In this document: piece after piece, positions 1 to 8,093 of the stretch | How the letters are laid out: each line of letters opens with the position of its first letter | How positions within the stretch are numbered: position 1 is the stretch's first letter | NCBI GenBank assembly: GCA_018985225.1 | Contig: JADGIF010000467.1 | Span: 1 to 8,093 of the forward strand | Reading direction: 5' to 3' | Length of the DNA: 8,093 bases | DNA from: Amoeboradix gromovi X-113 | Lineage: Eukaryota > Fungi > Sanchytriomycota | Notes under the pieces: model-generated | Told to the model about the DNA's origin: nothing | Databases searched by the model: none | What the model saw: the letters and a program-made list of their open reading frames with translations, nothing else | Made by a program: the position numbers and the translations under genes

Positions 1-174
1 ACCTTTTGCTTAGATGCTCAAAGACCTCATATATTTGAAAGAGATGTAGGGTCTTCTAGTTTTATTTTGAAGAGGGGATTGAAAGCAATGAAAGAAAATT
101 GGTACTATAGAAGATCTTTTATTAATGATAGCATTTCATCCGTATGGAGCACCTTTAAAAACGAGTTAGTCTAG
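1..174 (+). CDS. 3' end of a Fanzor (eukaryotic TnpB-like, probably Fanzor1-type) ORF, partial
   Basis: Frame +1 is open from base 1 to TAG 172-174: TFCLDAQRPHIFERDVGSSSFILKRGLKAMKENWYYRRSFINDSISSVWSTFKNELV*. With copy 2 upstream sequence (EYRLRKCTFC) this resembles the Fanzor C-terminal pattern ..LxxCxxC....RDxxxxxxI (second Zn knuckle + RuvC-III Asp). Whether the upstream part is intact cannot be seen. Confidence 0.6.
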   Translation, partial: TFCLDAQRPHIFERDVGSSSFILKRGLKAMKENWYYRRSFINDSISSVWSTFKNELV

Positions 175-193
175 TTTTTATATTTGGTGTCCC
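1..193 (+). mobile_element. Right part of a TIR transposon carrying a Fanzor/TnpB-like C-terminus (copy 1, truncated by window start)
   Basis: Colinear with 6400-6592 over 193 nt and with the reverse complement of 7997-8093. Ends in the TIR ...gagttagtctagtttttatatttggtgtccc (163-193). Confidence 0.85.
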
Positions 194-469
194 AAATAAA
201 AGATAAGACCAGCAAGGTGAAGGAAAACGCGGATAAACTGTTAGAATTCTTTGCCAATAAAAGATTATATGCAAACACTGGAGGATAGAGACATGTATAC
301 ACATCTATTAGTCCTGAATAGCGGAAAAGGAAATTGGTCTAAAATTAAACTATTTGAAGAAATTGAGTGGTATGTTGAACAATGGGATGAAAAAGAAGAT
401 ATTGTTGTCGAGAAAGAGTTTATTGACTCAATGAAATTCAATTTAACTGTTGAACTGATAGCACAATAG
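194..469 (+). pseudogene. Possible disrupted host coding fragment of unknown product
   Basis: Protein-like reading (IKDKTSKVKENADKLLEFF, frame +1) starts right at the transposon end and continues after an apparent frameshift near 250 into the 251-469 ORF (TTG start only). No family recognised. Confidence 0.25.
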
Positions 470-519
470 ACAATTAACTACTACATTTTAATCTCACTCA
501 ATACATGTAATCAAAACAT

Positions 520-603
520 GGAACACCGAATATAAAAAACTACACAATAATTATGATTCGGTCGACTAAAAATAACTGACCTAGTTTTCATGTTTGATAT
601 TTT
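520..603. mobile_element. Degenerate ~84-bp mini-MITE made of two inverted TIR relics of the same family
   Basis: From 520, ggaacaccgaatataaaaaactacacaa resembles the TIR gggacaccaaatataaaaactagactaa. 567-603 taaaaataactgacctagttttcatgtttgatatttt aligns to the copy-2 right end with one gap and only transition mismatches. Confidence 0.55.
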
Positions 604-749
604 AATTGGTACTTAATACTAAAAAACCTAATATAAAAGAGCCCCTTATACGTTAACATAGAATATCACAAAATCATGTTTTCCGAAGTTGTCTAGTTAT
701 TGTAGTGTCCTAAATGTCTTCAATCCTAAAAAACTCACACAGAGTACAT

Positions 750-2990: not shown

Positions 2991-3173
2991 ATGTGGGTTG
3001 TTCCTACCAACTGTGCAAAAACACGATATCTCAACACTTCGTATGAATGTAAAAGTGGCAATCTTAAGAAAACCAATCTGTAGGGTTACAGTTGTACCAA
3101 CTGTCATATTAAGATAGATAGAGACCGTAATTCAGCAATGCTAGTTCTCTGTGGAAAGTCTCAATTTTCTTAG
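2991..3173 (+). pseudogene. TnpB/Fanzor2-like C-terminal remnant (zinc ribbon + RuvC-III)
   Basis: Frame from 2991 reads MWVVPTNCAKTRYLNTSYECKSGNLKKTNL*GYSCTNCHIKIDRDRNSAMLVLCGKSQFS*. This matches the TnpB/IS605-OrfB signature (Y/N)TSxxCx(x)CG...YxCxxC...DRDxN(A/S)A. It has an internal TAG (3081-3083) and Ser in place of one Cys. Confidence 0.75.
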
Positions 3174-3548: not shown

Positions 3549-4544
3549 TTAAACCTGTATCAAGCCGTTCGAAGAATTTTTGGATGACACTCTCGTTTTC
3601 CATTCTCTTTTATAAGGCGTATATCGAACGGTGCAAAATAAAAGTGCGCTATCGATGATGCATCGCACCAAAACAAGCACAAAATCAATTACAGACGCGT
3701 ATTGCCTTGTGAGCTGATTTGATGGAATGTGGAAAGATTCATTAGTGATTAGTTTTGTTCCCACATCGCTAATTTTGTAACTAAAAAGGCTTTGTTTAGA
3801 TGATGTGCTAAACGACTTTCTTCGAGACGAGCTCGATATCTTGTTACTACTTGATACACTTCCAAAATACAGGCCAAGCTGTTTGCACATCGCTAAATTT
3901 GCTATACTGGGACTGTTTTTTAGTGGGTTGTTTGATATATCACAGTTGTCATAAGTCAAACGGCTGGAATCAGTAACAGCGAGGCTGGTAATTCCATTAT
4001 CAGTTATGTAGAGTTTTCTAGGCTTATTAAGCGAGATAGGGCCTGTGAAATGGTTACCGTAACTTTGTTCGGAATAACCAATGACAAGCTCAAATAGACT
4101 TGTTGGCAAGTTGACCACATTTCCGGACAACAAATTGCCTTCAACCCATAGGACTTTCAGGTTTGTCGGTAGGTTATCAGAAATAGTACCGTTCAGTCTG
4201 TTTTCTTGTAAATAGATGTATTCTAAAGTCGTTGGAAACAAGTCCGGTATTTTTCCGATTATCTTGTTGTAGTTCAAATCAAACGTGACTAGAAACTCTG
4301 GAAGCGCCGTACTATTAATACTTCCGTTGAGATTCCCGTATTTTAATGGGAGGTCTCCTCTCCATATAATTGATGTTACTGAGAAAGTATTACAAGTGAC
4401 ACCATCCGCTGTGCAGCAATCTTTTCTAATTTGAGTGTAGGTGTTTGGATAACTTATATCCATGCCAAGCTCTTTTGCCAAGTTGCTGACTTTTTGGCAA
4501 TCTTTTACTGCTCCAAATATAAAATAAACCAAGAAAGAAACCAT
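3549..4544 (-). CDS. Leucine-rich-repeat receptor-like membrane protein (plant-type LRR)
   Basis: Hydrophobic N-terminus; DCCTADGVTC cap like plant LRRNT; repeats LxxxxLxxNxLxGxI (LVTFDLNYNKIIGKIP, LEYIYLQENRLNGTIS, LKVLWVEGNLLSGNV); Ser-rich stalk; hydrophobic segment near the C-terminus; short basic tail; no kinase domain. Confidence 0.85.
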   Translation of the reverse strand: MVSFLVYFIFGAVKDCQKVSNLAKELGMDISYPNTYTQIRKDCCTADGVTCNTFSVTSIIWRGDLPLKYGNLNGSINSTALPEFLVTFDLNYNKIIGKIPDLFPTTLEYIYLQENRLNGTISDNLPTNLKVLWVEGNLLSGNVVNLPTSLFELVIGYSEQSYGNHFTGPISLNKPRKLYITDNGITSLAVTDSSRLTYDNCDISNNPLKNSPSIANLAMCKQLGLYFGSVSSSNKISSSSRRKSFSTSSKQSLFSYKISDVGTKLITNESFHIPSNQLTRQYASVIDFVLVLVRCIIDSALLFCTVRYTPYKREWKTRVSSKNSSNGLIQV

Positions 4545-5194: not shown

Positions 5195-6094
5195 ATGAGA
5201 TATATTTGGCTTTTTTTATATGTTGTAAGTAATATCGCTCTGACCTTACATAATAAGTTCGTGTTAAACCAGTTTGATTATCCATGGTTATTGACTGCTT
5301 TGCACTCAATTATGACGTACATTGGGGTGTCGATGCAGCATTCTCCAACGCAGCTGACCGCTAGAGAATGGAAAACAATATACTACTTCAGCAGTCTATA
5401 CACAGTTAATATTGCAGTCAGTAACTGGTCTCTCCTGCTCTCCAGCGTACATTTTCACCAAATAATTAGAAGTTCAACACCTTTTGTCACTGTCATATTA
5501 AATCTATTTTATGGTAAGACCACACCATTTCAAAAGATTTTAGCTCTTATACCAGTAGTTGTTGGTGTAATGATGTCTGCTGGAGGTGAAGTTGATTATA
5601 CCATTTTTGGATTTATTTTAGTTTGGGTCGGAGTTGTTCTAAGTGCTTTGAAAGGAGTAGTAACTAACCAGGTAATGGTTGGGCCTTTAAAACTGCATCC
5701 TATGGATGCTTTGTTAAAGTTATGCCCGTTAGCTGCTACTCAATGCTTTTTCATCGCAATCATCAATGGAGAGGTAATTAGACTTTTAGACGAGCCGCCT
5801 ACCTACAAAATAGTGTTGAGCTTGGTATTCAATGGATTCATCGCCTATTTGTTAAATGTTGCATCATTTACAGCGAATAAATTAAATGGAGCATTAACAA
5901 TGACTGTGTTTGGAAACGTTAAACAGATCGTGACGATAATACTGAGCGTTGTGATATTTAGTGCCATAATCACACCCATGAATGCTATCGGAATTGCGCT
6001 TACCTTGTTTGGAGGTATTTTGTATAGTTGGACTGATTTTTTGACTCAAAAGTTTAATTATTTACCATTGACTAGACCAAAAGCTTCAGAGTAA
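5195..6094 (+). CDS. Triose-phosphate/nucleotide-sugar transporter family (TPT/SLC35, DMT superfamily) protein
   Basis: Many hydrophobic helices; family motifs LTLHNKFVL..FDYPWLLTALH, NIAVSNWSL..SVHFHQIIRSSTP, LNVASFTANK..GALTMTVFGNVKQ, NAIGIALTLFGGILYS. AATAAA at 6099-6104. Confidence 0.92.
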   Translation: MRYIWLFLYVVSNIALTLHNKFVLNQFDYPWLLTALHSIMTYIGVSMQHSPTQLTAREWKTIYYFSSLYTVNIAVSNWSLLLSSVHFHQIIRSSTPFVTVILNLFYGKTTPFQKILALIPVVVGVMMSAGGEVDYTIFGFILVWVGVVLSALKGVVTNQVMVGPLKLHPMDALLKLCPLAATQCFFIAIINGEVIRLLDEPPTYKIVLSLVFNGFIAYLLNVASFTANKLNGALTMTVFGNVKQIVTIILSVVIFSAIITPMNAIGIALTLFGGILYSWTDFLTQKFNYLPLTRPKASE

Positions 6095-6153: not shown

Positions 6154-6592
6154 GGGACATCAAATATAAAAACTGGACTAACTCTCTTAAATAGTTTGAA
6201 TCATTATTTCAAGTGTATTAACCGATAGTAAATTAGACTAATCTAGTTAGTTCAAGTAAATTATTTTAGTATAAAAGCTTCTCATCCATCAAAATCTTAG
6301 AAACAATGACTAATATGAAGAAGAGAAAACAAAAATATGTTATACGAAAGGTGATAAAAAGAAAAACAAACAGATAAAGAATATCGTCTAAGAAAATGCA
6401 CCTTTTGCTTACACTCAAAGACCTCGTACACTTGAAAGGGATAGTGGGTCATCTTGTTTATTTTAAAGAGGTGAATGACATTTATGACAGAAAATTGGTT
6501 TGAAAGAAGGATTTTTATTAATAACAGTATTTCCTCCTTATGGAGTACTTCCTTTAAAAACGACTTGGTCTAGTTTTTATATTTGGTGTCCC
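6154..6592 (+). mobile_element. Complete 439-bp non-autonomous TIR element (copy 2) carrying a decayed Fanzor C-terminus
   Basis: 31-bp TIRs at 6154-6184 (gggacatcaaatataaaaactggactaactc) and 6562-6592, 27/31 identical. Interior 6400-6592 is homologous to 1-193. Flanks att|...|ttt, so the TSD is not clean. Confidence 0.9.
6307..6573 (+). pseudogene. Frameshifted Fanzor-like C-terminal fragment inside copy 2
   Basis: MTNMKKRKQKYVIRKVIKRK / DKEYRLRKCTFCL / QRPRTLERDSGSSC / ILKR*MTFMTENWFERRIFINNSISSLWSTSFKNDLV*. Relative to copy 1 it has -2 and -1 nt deletions and GGA>TGA. Confidence 0.6.
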
Positions 6593-6625: not shown

Positions 6626-7811
6626 ATGAGTGTTGAACACCTTGAGACTAATCTATATGAGCAGCAACTGATGAACCAAGAGCTCCAGAAGTACATAAAT
6701 AGATTGAAGCATCAAGTCTCTTTAAATTCGCAGGTTCAGCATGATGAAGTGCAAATTGTTGAAAATAAACCTTCCCAGATAATTATTGAAAAGGTAGCAA
6801 GCAGGTCCAGCTCATCATGTACCAATAACGAAAATTTACAGAAACAGAATCTAGAACTAATGCAGCTTTTACAGGATGCCCGTGATGAAATTGATGAGTT
6901 AAGACAAAGGCCCTGGAAAGAGGAGGAACAAGAGTTCGAGTCATTTGGTATACTGCAATCTGTTACACTGTCTACGCCTAAAAAAAGAAAACCATTGGAA
7001 TGGGATTCGAAATTAAATTTAAAGAGGTCAGATAAAATTGAATTTACTGCGAAAGCACAAATCGGACAAGCCGGAATTGTTAAAAGAAGGTTAAATCAAT
7101 ATGAAACTAAGAGTGCTGTTAATCTTCAGGCTAATTGTTTCACTAACTCGCAGCCCTTAAAAATTAATTTAGATCCAATGGAGGAACTTGATCTTTTGAT
7201 GAACAAGTTACGTACAAAAATTCCGGATTCATATATACCAAAGAAACTTAGTGTTCCTAGTGAGAACCTGCATCATTTAAACCAAATCTTAACAATTTTG
7301 GAATCTAAAAATAATTCCAGTTTAAGCTCTTTTGAATTCAATCATTCTCACTTTGCGTACCACATTATGACTGGTGGCTACATAAACTGTTTTAGAAATT
7401 TCAAAAAACCTCTTAATCATGTTTACTGCTGGATTCAACCGATGACTTGGCAACTATTTCTTTCTTTCACAGAACCTGGCCTAGAGTCAAAGTCTATTAC
7501 TTACACCTATCAGGTGGACCCGTATAAGACTTACTATTCTTTACTCTCCTGCCCTATAAACGAAGGAGTTCCTGTAATTCTTACATCTTCAAAATCCAGC
7601 GGAAATCGGCAGTTGCTAATTTTAAAACCTCTCTGTGCTCCAGAGTACCATGTGTGGTAATATTTATTAATTCAGGTGGAAGGGTATTATTGATTGGTGC
7701 ATATGGAATATTCAACATCAACAACGGATGAAATCAGACATATTTTATCAAAGAGACATTCGAGAAAACGGATTGATAAGGGCGCATCATATGAACTTGC
7801 TCAATGATTGA
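6626..7811 (+). CDS. Coiled-coil protein with C-terminal Num1/Mcp5-like PH domain; probably two exons (6626-7656, 7676-7811)
   Basis: N-terminal Q/E/L heptad segments. HIMTGGYI...HVYCWIQPMTWQLFLS..EP resembles the Mcp5/Num1 PH pattern (MIGE.L...H.RYFW.HPYT.TLYWS...P). The ORF stops at the PH C-terminal Trp, but removing a short GT..AG intron extends it 44 codons to TGA 7809-7811. Confidence 0.65.
7657..7675 (+). other. Candidate ultra-short spliceosomal intron (19 nt; alternative donor at 7654 gives 22 nt)
   Basis: gtaatatttattaattcag: GT donor, AT-rich body, ttaat branch-like motif, CAG acceptor. It contains the apparent stop codon, and its removal restores a frame. Confidence 0.6.
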
Positions 7812-7996: not shown

Positions 7997-8093
7997 GGGA
8001 CACCAAATATAAAAACTAGACTAACTCGTTTTTAAAGAAGGTGCTCCATACGCAGGAAATGCTATCATTAATAAAAGATCTTCTATTATACCA
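7997..8093 (-). mobile_element. Right end of the same Fanzor-carrying TIR element, inverted (copy 3, truncated by window end)
   Basis: Reverse complement matches 100-193 with few substitutions and one 3-nt indel; translates WYNRRSFINDSISCVWSTFFKNELV*. Confidence 0.88.

Follow-up and report, generated by a model that had tools for sequence, protein, structure and literature searches.

Miniature Transposon Copies in the Fungus Amoeboradix gromovi Very Probably Derive from a Divergent Fanzor-Bearing Element

Results and Discussion

Three copies of one repeat in an 8,093-nucleotide stretch of Amoeboradix gromovi X-113 DNA (the window) are very probably internal-deletion miniatures of a transposon of ~2–2.2 kb that has terminal inverted repeats (TIRs) and a single, highly divergent Fanzor gene. 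The window is an entire contig (G000:C732) of an AT-rich, 10.5-Mb assembly of 1319 contigs, in which the family numbers at least ~750 copies, or about 1 per 14 kb. The Fanzor gene was under purifying selection while the family diversified. A plausible reading is that the right end kept by the miniature copies templates an omega RNA.

Copies in the Window

Repeat finding and alignment located the three copies at the same coordinates as an earlier, sequence-only reading of this DNA had proposed (table 1), and the 25-nt terminus of the element matched the window four times at up to three mismatches, against zero matches expected from 200 shuffles. The one complete copy, copy B, was placed in a 531-bp spacer between the stop of a transporter gene at 6094 and the start of the next ORF at 6626. 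Its two arms are 31 nt each, 87% complementary and of the form GGGAC...GTCCC, in agreement with the earlier description of a complete 439-bp copy with 31-bp TIRs; its left flank lacks one duplication base relative to the AC-ANNT found beside GGGAC across the family.

Table 1. Coordinates of the element copies and their parts in the window
Feature	Positions	Strand	Remarks
Copy A, young subfamily-A right end	1-193	+	Cut by contig start
Copy A, target-site duplication	194-197	+	AAAT, fits the ANNT rule
Copy B, complete non-autonomous ("ghost") copy	6154-6592	+	439 bp, older subfamily B
Copy B, left terminal inverted repeat	6154-6184	+	31 nt; AAC-ATT directly 5'
Copy B, relic of the putative Fanzor N-terminus	6306-6374	+	Lys-rich, NLS-like, MTNMKKRKQK...
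Copy B, relic of the putative Fanzor C-terminus	6376-6570	+	Second zinc-ribbon CxxC, ERD (RuvC-III), tail
Copy B, site of the predicted right-end hairpin	6541-6592	+	Degraded here
Copy B, right terminal inverted repeat	6562-6592	+	Ancestral stop codon within
Third copy, subfamily-A right end, inverted	7997-8093	-	Cut by contig end

The lysine-rich N-terminal relic of copy B matches MAKRKQK...KSKKKKP in a 130-aa ORF from another locus (L072) and the MVKKKRK... start of a metagenomic protein, P0009, while its C-terminal relic aligns with the tail of a 427-aa ORF in a longer copy (L081). KEYRLRKCTFC is read from 6376 and ERDSGSS one frame over, with several stops, and since these peptides lie in successive frames, copy B carries two frameshifts. 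Old and degraded, the complete copy is probably inert. Copy A retains an open tail of the Fanzor frame at 1–171 with a stop codon at 172–174, inside the inverted repeat at 163–193; its peptide, TFCLDAQRPHIFERDVGSS...KNELV, is read in a single frame. The lysine-rich segment, YRLRKCTFC and ERD(V/S)GSS peptides that had been noticed earlier were thus all found again in copies A/B. The third copy is flanked by AACT in element orientation. Because the window is a whole contig, both flanking copies represent assembly breaks inside the repeat.

A possible fourth relative, much older and shorter, occupies 519–711 (+), where a left-end-like GGAACACCGAATATAAAAAAC at ~521 has ACAT directly 5' of it and a right-end-like GTCTAGTT..GTAGTGTCCT at 691–711 is followed by AAAT. 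Both ends of this contig fall within copies of the family, and in many other contigs the same is true of the first ~100 nt. Host ORFs between the copies are uninterrupted, and by eye from their translations we take them to be an NDUFS2-like complex I 49-kDa subunit (1125–2432), a leucine-rich-repeat protein (3549–4544, minus strand), a sugar-phosphate/nucleotide-sugar transporter-like membrane protein (5195–6094) and a coiled-coil protein (6626–7660).

Family across the Genome

A right-end 19-mer allowed up to two mismatches matched the genome 757 times (377 forward and 380 reverse), and the reversed-pattern control did not match at all. Many of these matches fall less than 110 nt from a contig end, and this crowding indicates that contigs are broken by the family, which is a main cause of assembly fragmentation. 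Copy B has at least 40 full-length relatives at 81–87% identity (1290 first-look candidates), and the copy-A type is younger, with at least 40 scored matches at 93–97% identity (908 candidates).

Complete elements among the fetched loci range from 294 to 649 bp. Subfamilies A and B have their left end in common over only ~36 nt and their right end over ~215 nt, and this right block starts exactly at the KEYRLRKC codons. Separate deletion classes spanning the whole size range all carry the same block. In terms of the ORF, the miniature copies keep the first ~45 codons, which are lysine-rich and NLS-like, and the last ~65–80.

The Parent Element and Its Reading Frame

The relic compared directly gave nothing, having no match in Pfam when searched alone and no BLASTP similarity to the TnpB of this genome; the link to a parent came only from a profile search of protein representatives. 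A profile of 20 stop-free relic tails, searched against 1.84 billion such representatives, returned 10 proteins. One is P0009, of 616 aa, encoded on a metagenome contig (L093); shorter kin were also recovered. P0009 starts MVKKKRK and ends ...SYRLRMCTDCLSDNKPCFSERDFGSASFILKRGL, the same tail as the relics, and on L093 no ends resembling those of the family adjoin its ORF. What immediately precedes the relic, ...VDEYHTSKMCSVCENEIDKSNDV..., comes from P0006 and P0001. In a search for further homologues by profile words, three proteins only were found. The middle of P0009, which is missing from the miniature copies, has 47 matches in the A. gromovi genome.

Recovery of longer copies had been proposed as a check on the sequence-only reading, and such copies were found. 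In L081 a 427-aa frame is truncated by the start of the contig (436 codons are open) and terminates 24 nt into a right inverted repeat that differs from that of the family by two mismatches. The L083 copy spans 1660 bp, has the family ends on both sides and contains fragments of this ORF. Miniature copies and Fanzor-bearing elements have both ends in common, and the parent frame reaches its stop codon within the right inverted repeat. The claim that copy B is an internally deleted derivative of a Fanzor transposon was therefore supported, in that longer elements with the same ends carry an ORF of TnpB/Fanzor type. The assembly yielded no Fanzor gene of the family that was both complete and intact; the 436-codon frame of L081 came closest.

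In the 130-aa ORF of L072, a deletion has brought the N-terminal ~45 codons (MAKRKQK...KFSKT) next to the last ~80. As L083 runs this N-terminal text on into the protein body, the lysine-rich segment of the relics represents the NLS-like start of the nuclease. It could be argued from its one fully open copy that the 130-aa ORF is itself a working small protein, but it was open in 1 of ~80 loci examined and is a fusion of N- and C-terminal Fanzor pieces, and we consider this very improbable. The parent frame carries a set of recognizable nuclease motifs in the family alignment.

RuvC-I reads IGIDPGV in L081 and L083 and YGCDPGV in P0009 and P0011. The canonical RuvC-II site is FWGDGQF or YWGNGNF, with glycine at the glutamate position, and an alternative glutamate, assigned by motif and by hhalign, lies ~38 residues further on in (I/V)NE(S/D)YTSK (INESYTSK). 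Fanzors have likewise replaced the canonical RuvC-II glutamate by glycine or proline and have another glutamate ~45 residues on (PMC10530073). The zinc ribbon consists of a CxxC after NE(S/D)YTSK and then RL(R/K)xCTxC, so that all long members have CxxC...CxxC, and RuvC-III follows as ERDxGS(S/A)xFI, in which ERD is invariant in the long members and nearly so in the relics. The context of the RuvC-III aspartate in TnpB and Fanzor proteins is usually RDxNAA. In every member of the present family the residues after ERD are GS[SA] and not NAA, and a family profile search of all PDB sequences matched no Fanzor or TnpB; both results agree with the earlier suggestion of a divergent subfamily.

Relationship to TnpB and Fanzor Proteins

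Placement of the parent ORF in the TnpB/Fanzor superfamily, as judged from profile comparisons and a predicted fold, is well supported. The TnpB/Cas12f TNB domain (PF07282) ranked first among Pfam matches in six members and second in P0009, with scores in these seven members of 26.1, 24.6, 24.4, 21.2, 20.8, 17.5 and 13.6 bits, the cut-off being 26.3. Aligned by hhalign to the alignment of the genome's own IS607-type TnpB, the family gave an E value of 8e-4 over 182 columns with the D/E/D residues colinear, pairing GCDPGV with ALDPGV, NESRTSK with TEEFTSQ and ERD with DRD; against a single TnpB sequence, hhalign aligned the ribbon only.

The TnpB-like fold comes from one source, the ESM Atlas model of P0009 (pTM 0.63). 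Its feature neighbors in that atlas (score 0.98, 215–219 of 256 features) were giant-virus "transposase" clusters with PF07282, and its structure neighbors (TM 0.70 over ~500 residues) were likewise giant-virus PF07282 clusters; bacterial IS605 OrfB/TnpB clusters scored TM 0.56–0.64 to P0009, measured on the hit. An AlphaFold model from an eight-sequence alignment had a mean pLDDT of 38 and was unusable.

It had been recognized from the outset that the parent might lack RuvC motifs and prove to be a DDE transposase or other zinc-finger protein, of which the relic would be the C-terminus. Taken by itself the relic would allow this, having one CxxC only in addition to its lack of Pfam and BLASTP matches. 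The longer copies, however, add the first CxxC, ESYTSK and the RuvC-I strand, giving an ORF with RuvC-I, RuvC-II, ribbon and ERD that is not a DDE transposase; PF07282 is the only recurrent Pfam match and the structural neighbors are TnpB-type. We regard a DDE or other zinc-finger origin as highly improbable and a TnpB/Fanzor-type parent as the reading to retain.

Assignment to Fanzor1 in particular would come solely from the transposon context of 31-nt TIRs and a 4-bp target duplication. No serine recombinase ORF adjoined the ORF in L081 or L083.

A Second TnpB Family and Further Open Frames

A second and unrelated TnpB family is represented in the window at 3012–3173 (+) by a degraded C-terminus, recognizable by C..C, one stop, C..C and DRDRNSA. 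This family has at least 150 PF07282 matches in the genome from 560 candidates, mostly ~144-aa C-terminal ORFs, which occur in hundreds of copies, and looks like a separate set of truncated copies. A full copy (L040, 569–672 aa) lies 3' of a serine-recombinase (Resolvase) ORF, which marks the family as IS607-like or Fanzor2-like.

Abundant as these IS607-like genes are in the same genome, we rejected them as the origin of the present copies and find that origin scarcely credible: GGGAC ends flank the ORF in 0 of 20 fetched loci, the GGGAC matches in 6 of the 20 read as adjacent miniature copies, there is no BLASTP similarity, and the tail reads DRDHMAARNIY as opposed to ERDAGSSSFIL. The separate, TIR-bearing Fanzor element described above remains the preferred parent.

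Two more open frames, of 693 and 748 aa (G000:C363:1637-2116, minus strand, and G000:C1184:5144-5548, plus strand), are 27–32% identical to the RuvC half of P0009 and could represent additional Fanzor families with intact genes.

Selection on the Nuclease

Compared with five other long copies, the ORF of L081 gave dN of 0.16–0.61 with dS at or near saturation, and dN/dS of 0.08–0.24. In their consensus tails, subfamilies A and B have the same stop and a conserved frame, with dN/dS of 0.34 over 65 codons. These low ratios indicate that the nuclease was a working gene while the lineages behind the miniature copies diverged. Within each subfamily the copies have decayed almost evenly along their length, as expected if they are dead, and so give no indication of being under selection themselves.

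Insertion Sites

Insertion is accompanied by a 4-bp duplication of the form ANNT, in which the first base is A and the last mostly T; examples from elements with both ends include AGAT, AAAT, ACAT, AATT, ATGC, ACTC, ATAG and AAAC. Among 57 right flanks the sequence is A (50/57), N, N, T (41/57). The 49 left flanks, read as the reverse complement, give A, N, N, T (42/49) followed by G (41/49) and T (37/49), which corresponds to AC-ANNT beside GGGAC, with AC at -6/-5. At the mirror positions right of the element, G was found in 19 of 57 and T in 21 of 57. With AC at ~80% on the left and ~35% on the right, the target is asymmetric relative to the element. In the empty site AC would lie just 5' of what becomes the right-end flanking sequence, so the logo is such as a target-adjacent motif would leave. 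By analogy with the nuclease SpuFz1, which requires a CATA motif (PMC10432273), we infer that the left-only AC may be the imprint of a nuclease target-adjacent motif.

Candidate Mobilizer

A transposase associated with the family had been suggested as something to look for, and a near-identical copy of the family end was found beside a DUF7869 ORF. Genome-wide there are 29 matches to DUF7869. In L097, 29 nt that are 27/29 identical to the family end lie 134 nt past the DUF7869 stop, with ATTT 5' of them, and another DUF7869 ORF, in L095, is followed after 99 nt by a more degraded version; in both loci the end faces away from the transposase ORF. The ~90 nt inside the L097 end recur at 15 other places, including two inverted pairs. 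One pair (C915:52-121, plus strand, and 5461-5547, minus strand; ~70–87 nt), 5.4 kb apart, brackets a 586-aa DUF7869 ORF, and the other (C901:4998-5084, plus strand, and 5822-5900, minus strand) belongs to a short derivative. No composite element with both a transposase and this Fanzor was seen here.

Long open DUF7869 ORFs occur in L097 and L096. That of L097 (L097:427-2487, G000:C556) encodes 687 aa with a C-terminal homeodomain (PF00046, E 9e-10), and the transposase-like 586-aa ORF occupies L096:460-2217 (G000:C915).

We tentatively take the DUF7869-plus-homeodomain transposase to be Sola-like. The near-identical 29-nt end beside its genes makes it the likeliest candidate for the mobilizer, and the copies would then have been moved in trans by a DDE transposase, most likely this protein.

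The Right End and a Possible Omega RNA

Over its last 215 nt the element has no excess of folding relative to shuffles (z scores of -0.56 and +1.19, and -1.27 for the opposite strand). RNAalifold, applied to 48 right ends, predicted one hairpin, in which GGAGCACC pairs with the last 8 nt of the element and the inner stem is UAAAAAC/GUUUUUA (AAAAAC/GUUUUU). Its 11 consensus pairs are each kept in 41–48 of the 48 copies, and no compensatory changes were found among these right ends. Scored on the terminal 80 nt together with 15 nt of flank, the hairpin had z values of -4.06, -3.26 and -2.01 in three young copies, the first of these being copy A, and of +0.05 in copy B owing to mutation of its outer stem. 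As GGAGCACC is not in the left end on reading the subfamily consensus, the hairpin appears to be specific to the right end. The index of public sequencing runs returned one run that contains this stretch, a DNA run.

In L081 (1258-1337), the 5' arm of the inner hairpin has undergone four A-to-G changes, all of which leave a G able to pair with U. Such changes fit a plus-strand RNA and not DNA, and all four are in a single lineage.

By analogy with known Fanzor systems, it is plausible that the retained right end templates an omega RNA, whose guide would be the flank beyond GTCCC. The alternative, to which we give somewhat less than an even chance, is that the copies are ordinary dead MITEs, deletion derivatives of the Fanzor element without functional RNA, in which the right 215 nt have been kept by descent and by the need of the transposase for subterminal sequence, and AC is a target preference of that transposase. 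The hairpin without covariation, the 215-nt right end without folding excess and the nearly uniform decay within subfamilies all fit dead MITEs, and a weak G excess (33%) at the right mirror position hints at a partly palindromic ACANNTG. Against this, the left/right asymmetry of AC is unusual for a DDE target site and parallels the CA beside the Spu-1 Fanzor and ghost loci, whose nuclease requires CATA; independent deletion classes have kept the same right block; a terminal hairpin with z down to -4 appears specific to the right end; and the ghosts of Spizellomyces have functional omega RNAs.

The more far-reaching possibility is that the at least 750 ghosts form a genome-wide library of omega RNAs, with their own flanks as guides, that would be used in trans by the rare, divergent Fanzor (ERDxGSS), with the left AC as the target-adjacent motif and the Sola-like homeodomain transposase as the mobilizer. 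Taken as a whole, this combination is tentative and we think it rather unlikely.

Comparison with Known Systems

The family is of the same kind as the Spu-1 Fanzor1/ghost system, and its target duplication resembles that of Sola2-borne Fanzor1 elements. The Spu-1 Fanzor and 134 ghost loci are bounded by inverted repeats of 30 nt, with a conserved CA that precedes the left repeat only (PMC10432273); the ghosts of Spizellomyces punctatus are ~550 nt and their omega RNAs are functional (Saito et al. 2023, PMC10432273). Both families are based on a ~2-kb element with a single ORF and ~30-nt inverted repeats, both have many ORF-less copies that keep both ends and the region beside the right repeat, both have conserved bases upstream of the left repeat only (CA in Spu-1 and AC here), and both reside in an early-diverging zoosporic fungus. 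In contrast to this shared layout, the present protein has no sequence similarity to SpuFz1 detectable by the PDB profile search, and its RuvC-III context is ERDxGS[SA]. The ORF here runs into the right repeat, so that ~60 codons would lie within the putative omega RNA as well. Copies are more than five times as numerous as those of Spu-1, in a genome less than half the size, and a candidate transposase is present. RNA and activity were shown for Spu-1, whereas the A. gromovi system is known from its sequence.

Bao and Jurka described Fanzor1 in dictyostelid Sola2-type transposons (DFa-1..3 and PPa-1, 4 and 5) with 4-bp AWWT duplications (Bao and Jurka 2013, PMC3627910). Those elements and the present family have in common TIRs, AT-rich 4-bp duplications (AWWT there, ANNT here) and derivatives without transposase, but the candidate transposase here is a DUF7869 protein with a C-terminal homeodomain, linked to the family by a common 29-nt terminus.

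Giant-virus "transposase" clusters with DUF8286 and PF07282 in the ESM Atlas are the nearest neighbors of P0009 by both features and structure. HMMER found no sequence-level match to these clusters, and viral contigs scanned by protein pattern and by exact end yielded nothing.

The miniature copies may also be likened to the PATEs of bacteria, which are non-autonomous derivatives of IS200/IS605 that keep the omega RNA. Both are short derivatives of TnpB-type elements in which the termini have been retained along with an RNA-coding right end, the latter being conjectural here. PATEs differ from the present copies in deriving from hairpin-ended, single-strand transposons moved by Y1 transposase, without TIRs or target duplications.

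Implications

To our knowledge, Fanzor1 with ORF-less ghosts has been characterized in one fungus, Spizellomyces, and no transposase was found there. The A. gromovi family adds a second, very divergent fungal lineage with far more copies. As its protein branch lies below the Pfam cut-off and beyond the reach of searches against solved Fanzors, it widens the sequence space of eukaryotic RNA-guided nucleases. The insertion-site logo predicts a target-adjacent motif that can be tested, and together with a candidate transposase with common ends it makes both the role of Fanzor for its transposon and the identity of the mover more approachable. If the ghosts did prove to be an omega-RNA library, this would be the first natural Fanzor1 element for which both mobilizer and nuclease are named.
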